The notes beneath the pieces are model-generated. The model saw only the letters and a list, made by a program, of their open reading frames with translations. It did not search any database and had not been told where the DNA came from. A stretch of DNA of 64,000 nt, taken from Podarcis pityusensis (taxonomy: Eukaryota). A program made the translations under genes and the position numbers. Below, piece after piece: positions 4,180 to 47,300 of the stretch. Each line of letters opens with the position of its first letter. Positions within the stretch are counted from its first letter, which is position 1. Where the stretch lies: the NCBI GenBank assembly GCA_964106645.2, contig OZ067045.1; one strand, written 5' to 3'.

Positions 4180-5003
4180 ACTTGCAAGGTTTGTCTTTAT
4201 TTTGTTCTTTATATTTTGAAAGTGAAAAGAAATAGTATCGAGTCAATTTCTTTCTTTTTTTAAATATTTGTTCTATGTATTTACAAGCCTTAAAGTTGCT
4301 CTAAAGGTTCTGAAAGTATCACTAGTACTTTTTGCTGCTTCTTTTTTCTTCTTTCTCCAGGATAGCACTGTTTTGCTTTGAGCAAGTTATTTTTCCAAGC
4401 AGTCTGGTCCACAGCCGTTTTCTCAAACGCGGTTTTCCTTCAGCTCCAAGGTTATGCTTTGTTGCTTTTGATTTTTTTAAATTGTGGAAAGCAAGCTGAG
4501 AGGCAGGCGGAAAAAAATGATGATTTTTTTTTCTTTTTTAAAAAAAGTTCATCTCCCTCATCCTAGTTCATTCCCAAACCCCTTTAGAATTTAATACACA
4601 GATACCGTGCTTTGAAACAAAACTGAGGTGGCTCTGAAAAGGGAGGGAAATTTATTTATCTGTTTTTTTTTTGTCTATTATACAATTTGCTACAGAAACT
4701 GCAAATTTAAAAATTACACTGACATTTGCAGTTCTTAAAATAATAAATTAAAGTTCTCACTTTTTGTCTAAAGAGATTTGTTTCTTTTTAAAGTAGGAGT
4801 CCTTGTTTAAAAAGGAAAAATAAAAGATTAAAACAGAAAATATTTTTCTATAAATAGATGTATTTTGGTTTAGTGCTCCTGCCCTCAGGTTTGAAGTGGA
4901 CTTGAATTTTCAAGTACTTTTTGTCCTCCATGATCGCCTTTGCGTTTATATCGGTTTTTTTTGTCTCCTCTCCCACTCGTGCACATGTGGGGGAAGGGGG
5001 GGG
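4180..5003 (-). other. EIF4G3: EIF4G3 3'UTR (AU-rich); distal boundary approximate
   Basis: AT-rich tract directly downstream of the last coding exon, ending near an AATAAA. Confidence 0.7.
4196..4201 (-). terminator. Polyadenylation signal AATAAA (alternatives at 4651-4656 and 3995-4000)
   Basis: TTTATT on + strand at the end of the AT-rich UTR. Confidence 0.55.
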
Positions 5004-5144
5004 NNNNNNNNNNNNNNNNNNNNNNNNNNNNNNNNNNNNNNNNNNNNNNNNNNNNNNNNNNNNNNNNNNNNNNNNNNNNNNNNNNNNNNNNNNNNNNNNN
5101 NNNNNNNNNNNNNNNNNNNNNNNNNNNNNNNNNNNNNNNNNNNN
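5004..5144. other. Assembly gap (141 N) covering the EIF4G3 stop codon and start of the 3'UTR
   Basis: N run seen directly, next to a G homopolymer. Confidence 0.99.
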
Positions 5145-17300: not shown

Positions 17301-20300
17301 AATCACATGTCTGTGGCCACAGCATGAAGCACAAAAATGATACATCCACTGTTTCATTCAGAATTTTTTTTTCTTGTTTTCCTCCTCTAAAAACTATGTG
17401 CGTGTTATGGTCAGGTGCGTGTGATCGAGCGAAAAATACGGTATCTCCTGAGACTCAGGCCAATAAGGTCCTTTTCAAATCATCCTTTTAACAGCAGATG
17501 GCAGGGATCAAATCTGGGCTTTCCTGCATGTTAAGAAGGAGCTCTGCCATTCCCCCGCTCCCACTGGGTATTTTCCTCTTCCAACTTCCCACACCACACT
17601 TACCGTGACGAGACACCTGCACATGTTTGCATAGGCCACAGAGAAGCTGGGTTCATCAATGGCTTTCTCGAACACAAGGTCGATGACGCCTTTCAACCTC
17701 TCTTCCGTGTCCACAGTTAGATCAGTCACTTGCTTCATCAGTTGATTGAACATCTGTGGTGTCAACTTATTCAAGATGCTTCGGACCTTGCGGAATAGCT
17801 CCTGAAGGGAAAATGCAGGTGTTAAGGTGCAAAACTCAAATGAGGCCAAAGGCCTAGGAGAGCAACGGCCCAAGACAGCTGCTTTCAGTACCCAGGCATG
17901 GACGCTTCATTGCGCCGTATGCCCAAACCATCCCATGTCAGCTTGAACAGCTCCACCCATGTTCATAGCAACTCCAGGAGGAAAGGGGAAGACAGGCAGA
18001 CAGGGAAGTTCAGACACAGCCAGGTTGAAACAACCAGACTCCAGAGCAGCAAAAGCTTTCTACAGCGGCAGATCAGAATGCAAATATATTCCACACAGGA
18101 AGTCTGTCCTCTGTGGGATCCCCTTTCTTTCCTCCCCCAAGGAAAGGCAGAAACAGTCAAGTAGATAACACAGAGAAAATACACCTGCCAGAGAGGTAGT
18201 AGGTTGTCTGGTATCCTCACTTGTCCTTTTAAGCCAGGGAGGTCCAATTTTTCGTATCAAGTGGGCCGCAATCGTATTTCAACAAGGAACCCGTGTGTTT
18301 GGGGAGGGAGGAGGAGCGAGGCCAAAATTTGTGCTGCCTTCCCGTAGCCGGGTAAGTGAGTCCCTCCCACCCCCTTCCAAAGCAGGAAAGCACTAACCAG
18401 GCTTTGGGAAGAAGGTGACAGAACTCTAGGACCCTGTTAGAGCACCTCCCTCCCCCAGCCCAGCACATCACTTGCTCAGCTTGGGAAGGCAGCACGAGGG
18501 GTGGGGAGGTGGGGGTGTCAAATGTTTCCATATGCGGCCTTTGGGCTGCACGTTGGACCACCCTGTTCTTAGCCATGCAAATCATGCTACAGCTAAGGGT
18601 GGGTGTTAAAGTGGGGAGTAGGGCCAGCCCCTCCGCAGCCCAGCCAGGAGGCTCATGTTCTTGCCTCACCTGGGTTTTGATGCTCTCAGAGTCTTCCGCT
18701 TGCGTCTCACGCTTCAGACTCGGCTTCCAGGCATTCTCAGCTTTCTTCAGGTGTACATCCTCTTTGACACAAACCGTGATGATCTTCCTGGGCTCCCGCC
18801 TCTGGCCTGGCTGAGATCTCCGCTGTCCAACGTTTAACAGCTAAGAGAAAAACCAGTCCCTTGAATGTTAAGTCCCTTTTAACACAAAGAGGCTCAAACA
18901 GCACATACAGGACATCCAGCATCAAAGCAACCCTGCTCTGCCAACACTACTTGGGAATTTATGCAGGTGAATATAGGAATGTAGCAAACTGCCTTATGCA
19001 AAGTCCATCTTCAGGGTTTCAGACAGGGAAACTCTCTCAGCTCTACCTGGAGATACCACTGAGGACTGAAGCATGGAGTTACAGACCTTTCCCACAGAGA
19101 GAATATGAACCAAGACGGAATGCTGCCGGCAAGCAGTCCCTGCCACACAAAAAGCAGCCCCTCCTTTGCTACCTGAGGCTGAGCCTTCCTGACCATGTTT
19201 CACTGTGGCTGTGATAAACAACCCCAGTTTTCAGGATACTGCACCTTCTGAGGTACAAGAGAACCAAACATATAAGAAGGGCAAGGTAGGAGGAGGAAGA
19301 AAGAGAAAGAGTGGGGGTTTTTTTGGGTTTTTTAAAAGGTGCTGGAGAACACACCTCCCCCTGCTGTCTGGCAAGTGAGCACAACAGCCCCAATCCTGCA
19401 ACATGAGGTCCATATCCAAGCAAATAATCAGGACTTTGCCTGAGAGGCACACCAGAGTACACAGGCCAGTGTGATCCAGACGCAGCTCCAACCGGCCCAT
19501 GGTGCTGCTGAGGAGACAGTGCCAACAAGAAACCTGACTGGTGGGACAGGGCAGCAAACCACCAGCTCGCTCCTCCTGAGGTTTCACCATTCGCACATGT
19601 TCTGCACTAATTAAGGCTTGCACGCAGGCACCAGCACCACATCAACTCCTTTGAGAATCCAGCCCTTGACATCCAAAATGCAGCAAGGAGCTCCTCTATG
19701 TGCTTAAATTCTACACCAGCAGCTTGAGCTGTAGCACCTGCTACTGTAGGTCCCTTTCTACAAATCTTGGGGGAAGCAGTGATCATTATGGGATACCCTA
19801 ACAGGCAGCAGGATACCTTTATTTTGGCACTTCAAAAAGTGTTTCACGGACATCCCCCAGCAGGAGTCTCTGCTCAACACAAAGCAGAGCAAAATCATCT
19901 CCCAGTCCGGGCAGGAATAAGCAGCAAAGGAGCTGTTACAAACTTGTGAAGTTCACGATGCCGGCCACATCAGGTCTGATGCAGACACAAGATTTTCGCT
20001 TCTGTCCCCCTGCCCCCTCCCCATACCTCTCACTCCCAACCACTGCTCCCAACCACACATTCCCAAACACCACCCAAGAATGTTTAATATTTTGCAGTCA
20101 GACGTAAGGGCTGCCATTTCATGGTAGCCCTCAGCCAGCATTCACCTATCAGCACCACAATCAACAATAATTCAATCCTCTATCTCCGGCACCTTCTGTA
20201 ACATAATGTCCCTTGCATTCTTTTCTAGCGTTAGAAAACTGAGCCACTGAGTTAGATTAAGGCCTTCCTCCTGGTGCATCTGGGGTGGCTTTTACAGCAC

Positions 20301-23300
20301 AGCAGCTGGCTATTTTTCTTAAGCTATTTGTACCTATTTCTACTTCACCTCACCCAAGTCCTTTTTGAAAATAAGATGCATTTTTTTAAACTTGTTACCC
20401 GATTAACTGTGCCACCAGGTACCAAGGTTAGTGAAAAGCTGTTACTTTCCAAAATGCAGAAGGGGGGGAAAGCTGCCATTCAGCAAGGCTGAGATGGAGC
20501 ATCCACGAGCTGCTAAATGCTCCAAGCCAAAAGAAAAACGAAGACAGGCCAAGCAGGACTTACCTGGTCTCCCCCTCTACACAGGACTGCGAAGAGCAGC
20601 CCTAGGGCAGATCCAGCTCAGGCCAAAGTCCCAGTATGCCCTCTGCTGGTGCTGTCCCACCCACCACTGAAGAGACGGCAGCCTAGAGAAGAGTACAAGG
20701 CAAGGCTGGTGCCATTTCCATTACAGGCTTGTGCTCTGTGGGGTTGTTTGCTAGCTCCTCTGAAGACAGGAGGGCAGAGGAGAAGGCTTTGCAAAAAGAC
20801 GCTCACAGTGAGGGAGGAAACTGGGGGTGGGGGCAGGATGGCTTACCCCTATGGTCAGGTTCCTCAGCTGTGGGTGAGATGAGACCAACAAAGGGCATGC
20901 TGGGGGCCCACACCGAGCAAGGGGCTGGAGTCCAGGTGGGGGCTGCACTTTGCAGGCCTGTAAAAAGAAAGAAAGGGGTGGGGGAGAGGAAGGTATTATC
21001 CACAGGCTGACACAGAAAGACCTGACATGCCCAAGTAGGTGTCTGTTACAGCAGATGGGCATCACAACTTCAGAAGGTAGGTCTTTAGCTTAAATTTAAC
21101 TCCAAACCCCCCCCCCATTTTTTGTCATTTCCCATTAAAAACCCATTAACTGGATGGCTATTCTGCAAGCCAAGAAGCAGGTGCCACTTGCAAAGAACTT
21201 CTTTCACCTGACTCCCCATGATTATTTTAAGAAGATTTCTCCTCTTCTTTTTCTTCTTCTCCCCCCCCCCCAGCCCCATATCGCCCCTGCTTGGCCTCCC
21301 CCTCCCCATTTCCAGGCCCCCACTATACAGAAACCAAAGGAGCTCAAGAAGCAGAACCTCAGCAGAATACTAAGCTGGTGGCCATGTTCCTGCCCACCTG
21401 TGTCAACAGAACCAATTGACTCCTTCAGAGGGGAAAAACACTATTTTCCAGTCAAATAGAGTCAAGGAAGCACGGGAGGAGCCTTACAGGTGATAGAAAG
21501 ATGCGAGAACAAAGTAAGGGATGGGAAGAAAGACAGAATGAGGAAAGGCACAGACCAGCGGAGGGAGGAGGAAAAGGGAAGAGGAGGAAGGAAAGAGAGA
21601 AACTGAGAAAACGTGACTGCAGAAGAGCTCCCAAATTGGGAGCTGCTCCAGATTCTGGAGGGAAAAGGCAAAAGGTCATTTCTAACTGTGGATGTAACTC
21701 TGACACTTACAGGTGTGCCCCGCCCTCCAGGGATTTGTCTTCCGAAATCAGCAAATGCTGGTGTGAAATCTGGACCCCGTGCCAATATCCGAGGATCCAA
21801 AGTTCGAAGAGGCAGTTTTGGCTGATTGATCTGTATTAGTAGAAAAATGTAAAGTTACGGGTAGCCATGCAGCAACCGTCTGCACAGACAGCAGCATTTG
21901 GTAGATACTCCCAAGTAGCCTCAAGAGCTACAGCTGAAAACAAAACGCACAGCCAATGACTCATCCTGCCCATCAAGCTCCATTTCTTTTCTTACTTAAC
22001 CTCTGAGGGGGGTGCCTGCTAAAGCTGAGCAAACTGAGGCATGGCAGTTCAAGGCCATCTAACTACCCCACCACCAGAAAGCAAAGCTTCTTCATGTCTG
22101 TTGACAGAGAGGCAGCTCAGGGGAAGGGAACTGGGGGTTTTCTGCTTCCTGGGGCTAGAAGAATGTTTTGGGGAAGCTGCATACATATCATCTAGTTTTA
22201 AACCCAGTCCAGTGGCAGCATCTCCTCTTGTGCCTTATTAATTCGGACCAGGTCTTCAAAATGTTGCAAAATCCAAGTTCTCAGTTTAAAACACTAGGCA
22301 TGCCTTTCTCTCGACCTTCAGCCGCCACCACAAACTCACTTCCTCTGCCTACATACTAGCCCCATACCTTGTCAAGGACCACATCGCTGATGGGCGGCAG
22401 CCCCTCTGGCTTCTGGATGCAGGCAGGCATGAACTGGAAGTCTAAGAGGAACTCCCGGTCGTACTGCTTCTTCCCTTCGGAGTCCTGGGGCTTCCACTGC
22501 TCTGTAATGACACCACCAGCCTCAGGATGGGGCAATTCATTGCGCCATGTTTTCCCACCAAGGCCCCCTTGCTCCAATTAGAATTGTGGTCATGGGGGTC
22601 TTTCTCCTTTGCCTCACCCTGTCCCCATTTTGTGGGGAAGTCACGAAATGGTCGAGCGAATGAGTGCATGGCTCCGTGGAAAAAGAATGTTGCACTCTGA
22701 TTGTGGAGGTCTGGCTTTGCATCCATTTGGTCACATGGAGCCTTGCTTGAGCCCTTTCTTGACTGAGGGACACCCCCCCCCCACCCCGCATCTCTTTGCA
22801 CAGAAGGAAAAAAAGAAGGGTTTGATGCTGAAGGGGAAGAAGCAGGAGCAGGACAGCACCGGGACAGCCGTCCACAGGTTTTGTAGCTTTGTTCTAAAGA
22901 ACCCTTGGGAAGCACAGTACAAGCAGCAGCAGAGCATGCAGCAGAGGGACAGTTGTGCACTCTGCTCTGTGCAGATGCACCTGGAGGCTCAGGGAGCATA
23001 GGTTGCCCAAAGAGCTACAGGTGGTCACTTTTATCACACAGAGGGGCAACGCAGCAGAGATTTGTAGAGAAGACGGTAGTCTAGGCCCAGCAGATATTCT
23101 ATAAAGAATTTATATGTTTCAGTCTTTCAAAGGGTCATTTTCAGGAATTAACCACCAATGAAGTGCTCTTTAAAGGGAGGCAAACATCTGGAGCCACAAG
23201 TTTGACATCCTGGAAACGAGAGCTCTGGCACCACATGAAAAATTAAAAGGCCTGGAAGGGAGTCGGGAGGCGTAAGTGCAGTGACGGCTGCCAGCTAGGG

Positions 23301-41300: not shown

Positions 41301-44300
41301 CTAAGGCAAACCTCAGTTCCTGGTAAGCAGAGTGTTTTCACACCCTCCCTCCTTTCCTTGACAAGGTTTGCTGCTCCTCCCCACAGGGGAGTTCACAGTT
41401 GCTTCCAACAGCTTTGTGTTGCACATCTTTGTGCAAACACTTTGCGCTAATTGAATGAGCGCAGAAGCAAGAAGGGCCCCAGGAATAGCGCTCCTCCTGG
41501 AGGAAGACGTGCCCACAGCCCCCTCGGTCTTCAAATAGCAGTTGGCAAGTTCAATGAGCCTCACCAAGTGTCACAGCAGCTGGGCCGGAGGAGCTGCCAG
41601 TTAATGGCGCGAGCACATGAGTCACACTGACCTGAACATCTTATGACACAATAACTGCAGGAAATGATGCCTCTGAGAGTGCTCTGCATTAGACTATCAG
41701 AGTTCCTGTCATTTTCAATGGCAGGAGAGAGGGAAGGAACCTCAAGCTGCACCTGATAACCAAGAAGCTCTCCACAACTCTCCATCAATCCAGTTGCCTC
41801 CTCATCACCCATTTGCTTTGAGCCATTTGGTAACATGTGAAGTTAAGCTGAACTCTGGTTCCAAGCTAACCCTTGATTATTTTGAGTTGGGTTTCTAATC
41901 AATGGGACACCATAAAGGTTTACGGCAAGTTACAACACTTTTCAAAGCCGTCTCTAAAGCTAACCTAACTGTAACCGCGTCTAGCACTGAAGATGGTAAA
42001 AGGATATTTGAAAATCTACAGCACCAGCCAGGAAGCCCAGTACTCCCCTGCCCCCCACTGATATGGACCCTTTTAACAGCCACAGAAAATATGGGATCTG
42101 GCATCTCCAGCATGTAGAACTGAAGAAACCACAACATTTTAACCAGAAACAGCACCTCTAAAAGCCACACCCCTCCACACAGCAAGTAGCAGCCACAAGA
42201 GTAACTCAGGCTGTCTGTTGGGGGGGGGGAGGGAGAGAGAAGATGAGCACATCATAATTAACTTATTCCCTGATGATTTAAGGCTACATGGGGAGGAACC
42301 CCCCTCCTATGATGTGACTTGTGTGATGGGCTACACAGACCTACACTTTCACCACTCCAGTATGCTTCGGCTCAGATGAAACAACAGTGCAACCCCCTTC
42401 TCATGAGTTGTTTCTGACCAAGGATGGGTTGTAGAAATGTGGCGGACTCATAGGTCCATCCACAGCAGTCAACCTCAGATGCTGAACACCTCCCCTAGAT
42501 GCTGCCTTGAAGGGGGCATGGATGGTGGGCTGGGCCAGCCCCACAAGACCAGAGAAAAACCCCTGAACCCAGAATCCAATTTCACTATTCAAGATTTTTC
42601 TCGTGTTTCCAACTTAGCATGGCTCTATTTGGTAAAGAAAATCAAGCAGTCTCCTGACTGCGGTAGACGTTCATAGTGTTTTTATTTCAGGTGGAATGTT
42701 GCCATCCTCAGAATGGAAAGTACTTGGGAGTATTGTAATGTGGCAATTGCTCCGGGCAAGTCTTTTGGATTCTGACCCCATTTCCCCTGGTGCCCAAGAG
42801 AACTAGATAACCAAACTAAGCACACACACACACGCACGCACACCCCTGACCAAGCAAACATCAAAGATCCCAGACCAACAGCCATCAGAAAGCTTTGTGG
42901 CAGCAGCAAAAGCCAGGGAGCACAGTTAGTGGGGTTGTTAATTGATGCAACAGAATTAGTAACCGTTAGAAGCTGAAGCTTGACTGTGCCATGGGGTTAG
43001 GGGGCTCTTTAGAAAGGGGGGGTTCTAAGAAAGCAAGGTGCAGGACATGGCCTGCGGAATTAGTGGAGGGCCAGCCAAGTAACACCCCCCCCCGCACATT
43101 TTCCTCCCAACCAGTTGGCAGCAAAGGGGAGGCGTAGTGAAGAGGGGCAAGGAGGGTACTGTACCTGATGATGATGGGCAGGTCGAGGCCCCGCTGCAAA
43201 CTGAGGAGAAGCAGGAGAAACAAAAACACAAAAAGGAAAGGCACAGAGAGTCAGAAACACCACAACAAAAGGCAAAAACTGTCACACTGTATGCAAAAGA
43301 AACCCACAAGGGGAAATCAAACAAAAAACCCAACACACATACACACACACTCTCAGGGTCAAAGCTGTGCTGCAGGACAGTGACAGACAGGTACCAAAAA
43401 CCCAGAAGGTAAAACTCTGCTGCCAGGTGAATGCACTGCTCAAAATGTGGGTGGTGGAGGTGCCTGCCAAAGTTGTTAGATAGCCAAAAGACACCCTAAC
43501 ACTAACATAGTTGAAGGAGGGCAGGGGGAGAAGGGTTTGCTGAAAAACCAAACACTAAGTTATTATTTTAAAAAAGCAAGGCAGGCCAGCCCTTGCTGAT
43601 GCGCATCAAAGCTGAGTGCAGGATGGAGAGCCCTGTCTGTGGCACAGCCACAACTTGAAAGACAAGTCAGCCTCACCTAGGGATACTGATATCTTGGCAT
43701 ATATGAAGCTTTCTAAGTGCAGCTGTAGAAACCTCTAAAAACTTCACTGGGCTCTCCTTCCTTTTTTAACGGAAAGCAAGCAAAATCCTGCGGCATATTC
43801 AGTGCAGCTGAGCGTGTGGGGACGGGTAGACCTGCAATGCTGTGGAATCAACTCAATGTTTCTCCCCTATCCTCTCCCACAAGAGAAAAGCCACACTCAC
43901 TATTCCCCCCCCCCCCCGGAACATTAACAGAAAATCTGCTATGAACAATAAAGCAAAAAAGGAGACTGCAAATGAGTTCACAACAACAACCAACAAGCAG
44001 AGAGAGTGTCATCAGAAATCAAGGAAACTACCAGAGCCTTCAGATCAACTGCCACTACCTTGCGGAAACATCTGGAGAGTTCAAGCTCTTTCTCAGCAGA
44101 AACCAGCTTTCCTAAGTGCCAAAGTTTACTGTGATACACTTAAATAACCTACTTTCTACACCAAATATAATATTCAGAAACAGAAACGGCAGACAGTCTC
44201 TCACTAGCATACAAACCTACAGAACAGGCTGCAGCGTCTATTTCAGGCAGAAAGAGATCACTTGTTTTCCATCAAAACGCCTAACAGATAAGTGTCATTT

Positions 44301-47300
44301 TTTTCTCAAAACCTCAATGTGCTCCTTGAAACTTCCTAAACACTTTAACACAGCTGAACGGACAGTTTCTGGCCCGTTTGCTCAACTCTGCCATTCTACT
44401 GATCCTCTAGCTGTTGAGAAACACACAAATTGAGAGCAAGAATTGGCTGCTAGTTCTTATATTAAATTTGGCACAGAAATATGGTTCAAAATTTGCTCTG
44501 CCTCTAGTGTGAAAAGTGGGGGCACAAGCAAAGTAGGATGGTAAATATCTGACCAGAGAAGCATAAAGCATTAAGCATGTCTACTTCTGGTTAAATAGGT
44601 TGAGGGATAGAAAGTCTATATTCCCAGAAAATCAGCAAATGCACACCAGTAACAGACCAAAAAAACTGGTGTTCATCTGTCCAAAAGCAAAAGTACCTGT
44701 CTTATCACTGTTCCACAGGAAGTATCACTTCTAAACAGCTCAGAAATCAGAGCCAGATAGTTGCAACTTAATAAAATTATGTGAAAACCAACGGTCCAGT
44801 AAATATGTTATATGAAAAATAAATAAAACTTCAACGTTAGTGGGAGGAAAAAAGAAAGACCCTAGTCTATTTTGCACTTGTCACCATTGGCTATTGGCTG
44901 CATAATTCCTGCGGACAGAATTCTTTCTCTCTGCCTCTCTCTCTGCCCCTCTCTCTATTAAGTAACTGTAAGCAACAGAACAAACTGTAGTCACTGCTGG
45001 CTCAGATTAAAAATAGGTTTCCTTTTTCCCTTTGCCTGGAGTTACAATTTTTGCCTGCCAGATGCTGGTCTTGCTTCCAATTCCTTCTGTGAATATTTGG
45101 CAGGGGGCCCCCTCTCCCGTCATGGGTTAAAGCTGCGTTGTGGGCACACTGGCTGTGGCCATTTGAAAACAAAGCCTCCCACTATAGCTCTTCTCTTCCC
45201 CACTTCAGCATTTTTGCTACGATGGCCAAATTGCTTTAAAAAGAAACAAAAACCTGTTGCAATTTAGAAATTCACTGAAAAGTTTTTAAAGTCTTCCCAA
45301 CTGGAATTAGCATGCAGAGTGTGAGGCACTGGCCCTGCCGTAACAGAAAACTTGCCTGGGAATGACACCAAGCTACCTGAATGGCAAAGGTAGCCGTGTC
45401 CAGGCAGAGGCTGTGCAATTGCCAATGGCCCTTGAATGCAGAAATAGATTGGAGTAAGCTGAAGGGCAGCTATGGGAAGAAGAACTAGGGTCCCTTCATT
45501 TGCCAGCACAAAAACAACTCCAGGGCCCACCAGCTCCCTCAGCTGGGGCTCTGGTGCCATAGTGGGTGGGGGGCTGTCTCTCTTTCTCTCTCTCTCGCTC
45601 TCCCTCGCTCACCCTCCCCCAAGCCTCCCTTCAGGGCCACAAAGGGGGGACGGGGAGAATAAACCAATGGAAACCAAGCCCAGAACGAAATGCAAGAGCT
45701 GCTTAGCCTAGCCCATTTTGCATTTGTTTTGGACTTGCGAGGGGAGGAGGAGAGGTGAGTGGGGGAAATGAAATGTTATGTGAGCAATTTTTAGTCATGG
45801 GGTGGTAATGATCACAAAACGTGACGATGGCAGAAGACTGCACGCAGGGTAATATTTTAGAGGGGGGATTGTTCATGACCACAGAAAAATGGCTGACGTT
45901 ATAGGTAGCTTCTTCTGTCTTAAGGTTTCTGCCAAAATTGGGGAAAGTTCCTGTTTTGAGGAGTTCTTGCCAATTTCCCTTGAGTGACTAATCCAATCAA
46001 ATGCAAATCCCCCACAAGGGCTAGAAAAGTAAATCTCAGGTACCTGATCACTCAGACCACCTGAAAAATTTGTAATAGGGTTATTGGGTTGTGGCTGTTG
46101 TGGGTTTTTTTTAAGGAGGGGGCACCCTGCCTCAATTTCTTCCTGCCACCACCTTCGACAGCCTTGGCCCCTTCCAAACTGCCGCTGAATGTGGCAGCCC
46201 GCAAGACACAGCGGCTTAAAGCAGAGATCGGATCAGTGCTTTTCTGTAGATCAGTCAACAATGTGGTCAAAAAATGAAACCAAAAAAAAGCAACAGAACT
46301 GAAAGGGGTGCCGCGGGGGCACGACTGCCTGCAAGAAGGGAGTACAGTTTGTTATATTGCTTACAATGCAGTATTTTATCCAGCCTCTTCCCGCCAAGGA
46401 CCTGTAAACCGGACTCTGTTCCAAAACCTTCCTCCGCTTCCAGTTGTCTGGGCAATGTACTGGCACTGCTCTGCTGGGCTGTCAAGAAAACTGGTTTAGA
46501 GACACGGCTCTCGAGTCAGACTCTCCCCTCTCGTTACAGCCATGAATGTTTCAGCTCTTGCTTTTTGCGCATCGTAACAGGGAGGAACATGCCCTACTAC
46601 AGTAAGGGTGGCTGGGGATGGAAGGGTGTCCCTTCTGCTGCTCAATACCAGTTTGTCATAGAGCAGGATTGTGGCCAACTACTGGGGCTGAGTGAGGAGG
46701 GAATGAGCTGGAGGGTCCTTTTCTAGACAAAAAACAAGAGTGTGCAGCTGGAACCAGCAGGGCTGTGAGCACAGGAGCCCAGAATTGCATTGGCCGCAGG
46801 AAACAAGTTTCTCCTTCCCCACTCGCTACAAGCCCTTTAAAGAAGGGGGCAGTAAAAGGTAAAGACACAAAGGGAGGGGTGTCCATGCATCTACCACACA
46901 ACAGCCACCACCAGAAGACACACCCTTGAAAGGCACAGGTTGTATCACTCAAACTTATGATGCAAGGTGGTATGGATCAACACAAGAGATTGAAGCCGGG
47001 CTCAGGGCCCCCTCTGGCAGCAGGGCACCAGTACCGTAGGCAATGACAGAAGTGCCCAGGAGTAGGCATTTACAGGCTTCTGGAGAGCAGGCAGGCAACT
47101 CAAAAAAGGATCTGACTCTTCATCTCTGAGAGCCCCAGAGGGCTTCAACACTACGTCACTTGTGCCACCTGGAAGCAGAGGGGAAGTCCTTCGGGTGCCT
47201 TTTTCTCAGGGAAGCTACTCGCAGAAAGGTTAGGAAGTGCAACGCAATGGCTTTGCTGGACGGCTGGACAGATGCAGCACAACACGCAGGCGAAATAAGG

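Follow-up and report, generated by a model that had tools for sequence, protein, structure and literature searches.

We analyzed a 64,000-nucleotide (nt) stretch of the genome of the lizard Podarcis pityusensis (GenBank assembly GCA_964106645.2, contig OZ067045.1). This whole stretch is called the window here, and positions are counted from its first letter. The EIF4G3 gene lies on the minus strand of the window. We found that a 111-nt coding exon of this gene, exon A, is followed in the pre-mRNA by an inverted copy of itself, that the two fold into a long and stable predicted hairpin, and that both arms are conserved between lizard and birds. Predicted isoforms of alligators and tortoises splice in the inverted copy as a second exon, exon B, where it leads to a premature stop. 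The explanation that we favor, with moderate confidence, is that an ancient inverted duplication gave rise to a coding exon A and a complementary poison exon B, and that pairing between the two tunes splicing among skipping of both exons, inclusion of A, and inclusion of A and B together.

Exon A is an in-frame exon of EIF4G3

Exon A lies between the exon with the eIF4E-binding motif (YDREFLLDF, at about 22.4 kb) and MIF4G, which starts near 17.8 kb. Its splice sites are a TTTCTTTCTTTTTACAG/ acceptor and a GGG/GTAAGC donor (a slash marks a splice junction or a cleavage site). The exon length is a multiple of 3, the exon is flanked by AG and GT, and it is open in the phase that the neighboring exons set. 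Because it sits between two phase-0 junctions, its inclusion would add 37 residues between the eIF4E-binding site and MIF4G. The upstream neighbor, E_b, aligns with the orthologous exons of three contigs from other species (L001, L002, and L006) at 78 to 83% identity.

A word search with the 104-residue read-through open reading frame (ORF) over exon A found one relative, on contig L001. A profile of the 37-residue peptide, run against protein representatives, added three relatives, one of them the Alligator sinensis isoform XP_025059416.1. A region search with the Alligator protein XP_059572592.1 returned 256 proteins, and our reading is based on the 120 of them that were listed. Among these 120, exon A is present in frame (GGRG../ACKVQ...IG/LLNVGPRRSQ) in full-length EIF4G3 of dozens of bird orders and several turtles, and also in annotated full-length EIF4G3 of Alligator mississippiensis and Sphenodon. 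Its length was always 111 nt across the orthologues compared. The orthologous proteins therefore bear out the original prediction, made from the letters of the window, of a true 111-nt EIF4G3 exon that lies in frame after the eIF4E-binding site and before MIF4G. Substitutions between the lizard and bird versions of the exon are distributed 8/3/9 among the codon positions, with seven amino acid changes. This distribution suggests that protein-level constraint on exon A is moderate, and nucleotide-level constraint may contribute.

The junction before exon A varies in the bird and crocodilian proteins (GGRN/A, GGRNV/A, GGRNVSGS/A, GGRGVA/A, and GGRGVAQ/A). The variable residues, which map to about position 21711 of the window, suggest alternative donors or small extensions of the upstream exon. 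Separately, a 285-residue "eIF4G3-like" model of the turkey Meleagris gallopavo (P0136) runs through the exon A donor into the intron between A and B (..LRNLPIGVSHIPLSFPIF..) and ends there. It represents either intron retention or a truncated model.

The inverted copy is predicted to pair with exon A and its splice sites

The copy matches exon A in two collinear blocks separated by an 8-nt indel. Positions 20581 to 20602 match the reverse complement of 20940 to 20961 at 19/22 positions (86%), and positions 20630 to 20673 match that of 20861 to 20904 at 33/44 (75%). Both matches had been reported at the same coordinates and with the same counts. Our recount of G-U pairs in the 44-nt block also gave identical numbers, six on the transcribed strand versus three on the other. 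In the pre-mRNA, the copy is located 174 to 266 nt downstream of exon A, where about 170 to 270 nt had been estimated. As single BLAST matches inside the 64-kb window, the two blocks are weak (E values of 0.03 and 0.35). The inverted repeat is far beyond chance because of the z-scores of its fold and because the same repeat, with the same spacing, is found at orthologous loci, as described below.

The repeat is longer than was first listed, since it extends from the pyrimidine tract upstream of exon A to a point past the exon A donor. Therefore, the duplicated unit comprises exon A and both of its splice-site flanks. This agrees with the idea of an inverted exon duplication, in which exon A was copied in reverse further downstream along with its splice-site flanks. 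An arm-to-arm alignment contained 81 Watson-Crick pairs, 16 G-U pairs, 7 A-C mismatches, and 21 other mismatches. Because A and B are complementary in this way, the pre-mRNA can fold into an imperfect hairpin of roughly 100 bp.

We compared the predicted folds with shuffled sequences. The minus strand of positions 20550 to 21000 folded into a single long imperfect hairpin of -186.7 kcal/mol (z of -5.44), and 0 of 100 dinucleotide shuffles were as good. The duplex of the arms alone reached -141.3 kcal/mol on the transcribed strand, compared with -109.3 ± 4.4 kcal/mol for shuffled arms (z of -7.3). On the opposite strand, the value was -123.0 kcal/mol (z of -4.1). The lizard duplex thus came through the comparison with shuffled controls that the original prediction had proposed, and it is stronger on the transcribed strand. 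In the consensus fold, the helix encloses the exon A pyrimidine tract, the acceptor, the entire exon, the donor, and the acceptor region of exon B. It had been suggested that the copy could mask the exon A acceptor. The helix does cover the acceptor, but this picture was incomplete, as the exon A donor is covered too. An Rfam scan of positions 19500 to 22000 gave no relevant match; the sole match was a chance-level long noncoding RNA outside the hairpin (E value of 0.81).

The inverted copy has splice sites of its own

The inverted copy had been described as a decayed, non-coding copy of exon A. It does contain the in-frame TAG and the shifted frames on which that description was based. However, it also has its own conserved acceptor and a consensus donor, and it is spliced after exon A in predicted isoforms, so it is more than a non-coding intronic element. 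Four predicted isoforms, from two alligators and two tortoises, contain the arm 2 peptide after exon A, followed by a cysteine and a stop. These are Alligator sinensis X16 (XP_025059416.1), Alligator species X11 (XP_059572592.1), Gopherus flavomarginatus X23, and Chelonoidis abingdonii X15. The peptide is arm 2 in translation, entered through a CTCTAG/GC acceptor and left through an AG/GTAAGT donor, both of which are conserved. The final cysteine and stop come from the first bases of the next exon, E_c, read out of frame (CTGTTAA...). In these alligator and tortoise models (...KS/C stop), E_c is read as C and then TAA, which places the stop two codons in. The acceptor at 20682/20683 in the lizard was placed by homology to these isoforms.

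The length of exon B in the window, 119 nt, is not a multiple of 3. In two birds, exon B is 113 and 114 nt long and has an internal TGA; the lizard exon has an internal TAG. The peptide and length of exon B vary, yet there is a premature stop in every lineage compared. The donor is conserved as AAG/GTAAGT in birds and as CAG/GTGAGC in the squamate-like contig L006, and conservation fades a few bases beyond it. The whole intron between A and B (20683 to 20846) has 164 nt in the lizard and differs in length among species. Among the 120 listed proteins, there was no isoform with B but without A.

Two small RNA-like runs from close relatives also bear on this region. A contig of the run X18 covers positions 20564 to 20714. 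Its match begins precisely at position 20564, the final base of exon B, and five more letters past this point are unmatched. This boundary at the exon B donor is suggestive, and only suggestive, of exon B use in relatives. For the lizard itself, the case for exon B is an indirect one. A second RNA-like contig, also from a relative, covers positions 20474 to 20814. In addition, the X18 run has a 162-nt RNA-like contig at 20212 to 20376, within the intron that follows exon B; its alignment requires 14 gap letters. These three were the only non-repeat RNA-like contigs on positions 18600 to 21900, in a set of contigs from which conserved exons may have been filtered out.

Both arms are conserved between lizard and birds

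We then compared the locus with contigs of other species. The species of contigs L001, L002, L006, and L009 were assigned from peptide matches only. L001 is passerine-like and much more distant from the lizard: exons are 79 to 86% identical, and introns cannot be aligned. Over about 11 kb, the sole non-exonic block that aligned between the lizard and L001 was window positions 20961 to 20551. This block runs from the exon A acceptor to just past the second donor, and the flanks on both sides are unalignable. Within it, lizard-bird identity is 82% for exon A, 85% for arm 2, and 90% for the second donor. The loop is 55% identical, with many indels. The exon A donor motif, GTAAGCCA, is identical at 8/8 positions.

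The passerine-like contig has the inverted repeat with the same spacing, as blocks of 44 nt at 77% and 26 nt at 92%, and the 26-nt stretch lies over the acceptor. Its fold reached -219 kcal/mol, with a z of -9.0 for the whole region and -15 for the arms only. A second bird-like species (L002 to L005) has an exon A peptide identical to that of the turkey, and its fold had z-scores of -8.8 (whole region) and -14 (arms only). The inverted repeat is also present in Acanthisitta chloris (L008, GCA_000695815.1) and on contig L009. Within birds, the arms are near-invariant and the loop is variable; L008 and L009 add almost no arm substitutions. On the squamate-like contig L006, which has the exon A closest to that of the lizard, the outer portion of arm 2 is retained, as is its donor. 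One further contig, L007, was considered as an orthologous locus and turned out to hold a different exon.

The copy is therefore kept from lizard to birds. A neutral relic had been named as an outcome that would speak against the original prediction, and that outcome is excluded. We consider it very improbable that the copy is a functionless remnant of a local inverted duplication or of a pair of transposons, such as miniature inverted-repeat transposable elements (MITEs). The lizard arms are only 75 to 86% complementary and the single BLAST matches are weak, as such a remnant would allow. However, in the comparison of lizard and bird, arm 2 equals the coding exon in conservation, with flanks and loop unalignable. 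A transposon, MITE, or short interspersed element (SINE) pair was also rejected as the origin, because two genomes show even, single-copy depth over 20500 to 21000 and neither arm has a second copy in the 64-kb window. This is unlike the repeat at 19008 to 19058. A local fold-back misassembly can be dismissed almost entirely, since independent contigs of two close relatives (98 to 99% identical) span positions 18600 to 21900 colinearly, five further loci in other species have the same arrangement, and we found nothing that speaks for it.

Evidence for and against a role of the pairing

To examine the pairing itself, the predicted stems of the window, L001, and L002 were mapped on their alignment, which effectively holds three lineages. 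Ninety stem column pairs are identical and paired. Another 36 differ between lizard and bird: 12 are paired in both, 10 in the lizard only, and 14 in the bird only. The 12 retained pairs consist of two double changes (e.g., C-G to A-U in the fourth helix turn) and 10 single changes compatible with wobble pairing. The sense and antisense arm duplexes reached -169 versus -157 kcal/mol in one bird and -168 versus -156 kcal/mol in the other, and across three species the sense-strand duplexes are 11 to 18 kcal/mol more stable than the antisense ones. G-U pairs exceed A-C mismatches in the same three species, at 16:7 (P = 0.047), 10:7, and 12:7, although these counts are not independent. The strand bias in stability, the excess of G-U pairs, and the presence of three splice signals inside the helix favor a role of the pairing at the RNA level.

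Several observations weigh against such a role and against the use of the two exons that it presupposes. About one-third of the changed pairs are retained, close to the expectation for independent change. The covariation is weak for this reason and is no proof of selection on the helix. On L006, the duplex is no better than shuffles (z of -0.3), as a run of about 13 G (L006:795-815) replaces the inner part of arm 2. The poly-G run lies on a 1.1-kb low-coverage contig and could be a real lineage-specific helix loss or an assembly error. Unless the contig is faulty there, L006 keeps exon A without the helix, and the hairpin is therefore not indispensable. Neither of the two RNA-like runs has a contig that covers exon A, and the RNA nature of these runs is a guess. 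The RNA-like contig at 20474 to 20814 crosses the exon B donor unspliced. In addition, the protein searches were aimed at proteins that contain exon A, whose cassette status is putative, and exon B inclusion is taken from predicted (XP_) isoforms.

The near-neutral retention of changed pairs would fit an alternative that we regard as unlikely, although less so than any other. Arm 2 may be conserved solely as a regulated poison exon with an enhancer and silencer code of its own, and the complementarity would then be a functionless leftover. L006 points the same way, with the helix gone while exon A, part of B, and the donor persist, and high nucleotide-level conservation is common among poison exons (PMC10789245). 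However, the greater stability of the sense duplexes over the antisense ones and the excess of G-U over A-C, both in three species, speak against a leftover. Birds also keep the 26-nt stretch over the acceptor at 92% complementarity. Moreover, a duplex of about 100 bp over three splice sites within 400 nt is expected to affect splicing, whether it is selected or not.

A second alternative is that the duplex of exon A and arm 2 serves mainly as an ADAR substrate, with recoding of exon A codons such as the AAA or CAG near its start. We judge this to be improbable. A coding exon is indeed imperfectly paired with a conserved complement a few hundred nucleotides downstream in the intron, and A-to-G was the sole change type listed in the two RNA-like runs. 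However, the A-to-G changes are in plus-strand letters, and editing of the minus-strand EIF4G3 transcript would read T-to-C. There are only one or two such changes, and no RNA contig lies over exon A. Arm 2 also has conserved splice sites of its own, which an editing-complementary sequence does not need.

Proposed mechanism

We propose that an old inverted duplication of exon A and its flanks left a reverse-complemented sequence in the same intron, about 170 nt downstream of the original. This sequence would then have become the alternative exon B. Its acceptor tract would be the complement of the copied exon A donor region, and its donor, a consensus GTAAGT, lies just beyond the repeat. If reptiles and birds share the exon pair, its age is well over 200 million years.

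In the folded pre-mRNA, the exon A tract, acceptor, and donor and the exon B acceptor would all be double-stranded. Only the exon B donor, at the foot of the helix, would be free. The folded state would favor skipping of both exons, with a direct splice from 21711 to 18840 that gives GGRGTP/LLNVG, a junction that we take to be shared with the canonical mammalian protein. Exon A is transcribed about 170 to 270 nt before its complement. If exon A is defined first, A would be included, and B would be left unpaired and usable, which may yield an A+B product that ends two codons into E_c. The premature stop of exon B may send A+B transcripts to nonsense-mediated decay (NMD) or may give an N-terminal fragment without MIF4G. 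The fold would in this way set the ratio of skipping, A, and A+B, and with it the output of full-length eIF4G3. The shared helix accounts for the isoforms seen, namely A and A+B but no B alone among the 120 listed proteins. The mechanism also predicts sensitivity to the rate of elongation.

More tentatively, we suggest that in reptiles and birds the self-complementary cassette and poison exons of EIF4G3 could act as a co-transcriptional folding switch among full-length, +37-residue, and truncated or unproductive products. The control of splicing by pairing, its kinetic order, and the involvement of NMD are inferences.

Coordinates and other features of the locus

The coordinates of the exons, splice sites, and hairpin are collected in Table 1.

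Table 1. Elements of the EIF4G3 exon pair and its neighbors in the window
Feature	Position	Strand	Description
Upstream exon E_b	21711..21830	-	Ends ...GGRGTP in phase 0, before GTAAGT; from translation and splice sites
Whole hairpin	20564..20975	-	About 100 pairs (81 Watson-Crick and 16 G-U) with bulges; minimum free energy and consensus folds
Exon A pyrimidine tract and CAG acceptor	20958..20975	-	Outer arm 1; pairs with G-rich 3' end of exon B
Exon A (hairpin arm 1)	20847..20957	-	111 nt, 37 codons, open in frame 0
Exon A donor GTAAGC	20841..20846	-	Invariant across species compared; pairs with exon B acceptor region at helix top
Remainder of A-B intron (hairpin loop)	20683..20840	-	Poorly conserved except 3' pyrimidine tract and CTCTAG acceptor
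Exon B (hairpin arm 2; the former "decayed copy")	20564..20682	-	119 nt; exon A and flanks, reverse-complemented
Exon B donor CAG/GTAAGT	20558..20563	-	Consensus; just 3' of helix base; last exon base is 20564
Downstream exon E_c	18670..18840	-	Constitutive; starts LLNVG in phase 0, ends ...IKTQ

Other parts of the window gave three observations on the gene and its surroundings. Two ORF pieces on the minus strand, 46251 to 46466 and 43060 to 43275 (the latter with ..AAGPRPAHH..), match N-terminal segments of the Alligator isoforms X16 and X11, and are likely further conserved alternative exons upstream in EIF4G3. A short, high-copy interspersed repeat lies at 19008 to 19058, where the depth is 10 to 25 times that of single-copy sequence in two genomes and dozens of contigs end. 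The loose ends of this repeat resemble a tRNA-derived SINE core (GGGATTGAACCTGGGACCTTCTGCAT). A run of 141 N is found at about 5000 to 5140, inside the last coding region of EIF4G3.

Implications and comparison with known systems

RNA structure is a recognized regulator of splicing, and poison exons are a recognized means of dosing regulators. If our reading is right, one event produced both RNA-structure control and a poison exon, and both arms of the helix are exons. Inverted exon duplication would then be a route to regulation, and EIF4G3 would have a structure-encoded rheostat on a core translation factor. Because the insert and the truncation fall in the linker that joins the eIF4E-binding site to MIF4G, A+B transcripts would encode a fragment that binds eIF4E and PABP but lacks the platform for eIF4A and eIF3. 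We assume that the 2A protease of rhinovirus and poliovirus cleaves human eIF4GII at PLLNV/G. If so, the points of A+B truncation and exon A insertion (window position 18840) sit at the viral cleavage site. A table in a review gives 699/700 for the 2A site of eIF4GII (PMC12709193). With a size of only about 410 nt and with conservation in chicken-like birds, the system is directly testable with minigenes.

Public annotation already includes exon A and a few A+B isoforms. The complementarity of the two exons and its conservation appear to be undescribed. The literature searched on EIF4G3, with respect to RNA structure, poison exons, and a muscle-specific exon, contained no description of this exon pair. 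One mouse study refers to a "novel muscle-specific exon" in Eif4g3 (PMC4801060).

The closest parallel that we can draw is with BRD2 and BRD3. In these genes, experiments showed that conserved complementary regions control the inclusion of poison exons and respond to the elongation rate (Petrova et al. 2024, PMC10789245). As in BRD2 and BRD3, EIF4G3 has a conserved intramolecular duplex by a frame-disrupting exon of a housekeeping regulator, with a proposed tuning of unproductive splicing. However, the paired regions of BRD2 and BRD3 are intronic and flank or neighbor the poison exon, whereas the arms in EIF4G3 are themselves exons, one coding and one poison, and are inverted duplicates of each other. 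The BRD2 and BRD3 cases are validated experimentally, and the EIF4G3 pair is known from sequence and predicted isoforms.

A human catalogue of pairs of conserved complementary regions, which includes exon loop-outs, left exons out of the gene sequence that it covered (Kalmykova et al. 2021, PMC8052449). EIF4G3 is not named in the main text of that paper (PMC8052449). A pair that joins exon to exon would therefore be missed by design, and catalogues that mask exons would be blind to this kind of arrangement. The EIF4G3 pair resembles the catalogued class in having long conserved complementary segments within a pre-mRNA that are linked to splicing. It differs from loop-outs between intronic arms in that its splice sites are inside the helix.

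Stem-loops that mask splice sites and lower exon inclusion are found at the MAPT exon 10 donor, in SMN2 exon 7 (TSL2), and in chicken beta-tropomyosin exon 6B. Those stems are shorter than 30 bp and mask one site each. In contrast, the EIF4G3 helix has about 100 bp and takes in a whole exon, both of its splice sites, and the next acceptor.

Duplexes between an exon and an editing-complementary sequence, as in GRIA2 (the Q/R site) and HTR2C, are ADAR substrates. As in GRIA2, a coding exon of EIF4G3 can pair with a conserved complementary sequence further along the intron. Unlike in GRIA2, that complement is bounded by splice sites of its own and serves as an exon in predicted isoforms, and we found no evidence of editing in the two RNA-like runs.

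Finally, inverted pairs of intronic Alu elements shift exons to alternative use, and an antisense Alu supplies a pyrimidine tract and is exonized. The EIF4G3 pair likewise places double-stranded RNA near an exon, and its reverse-complement sequence provides a tract and is exonized. Unlike the Alu elements, the EIF4G3 repeat is a single-copy duplicate of a host exon and has been conserved since before the lizard-bird split.

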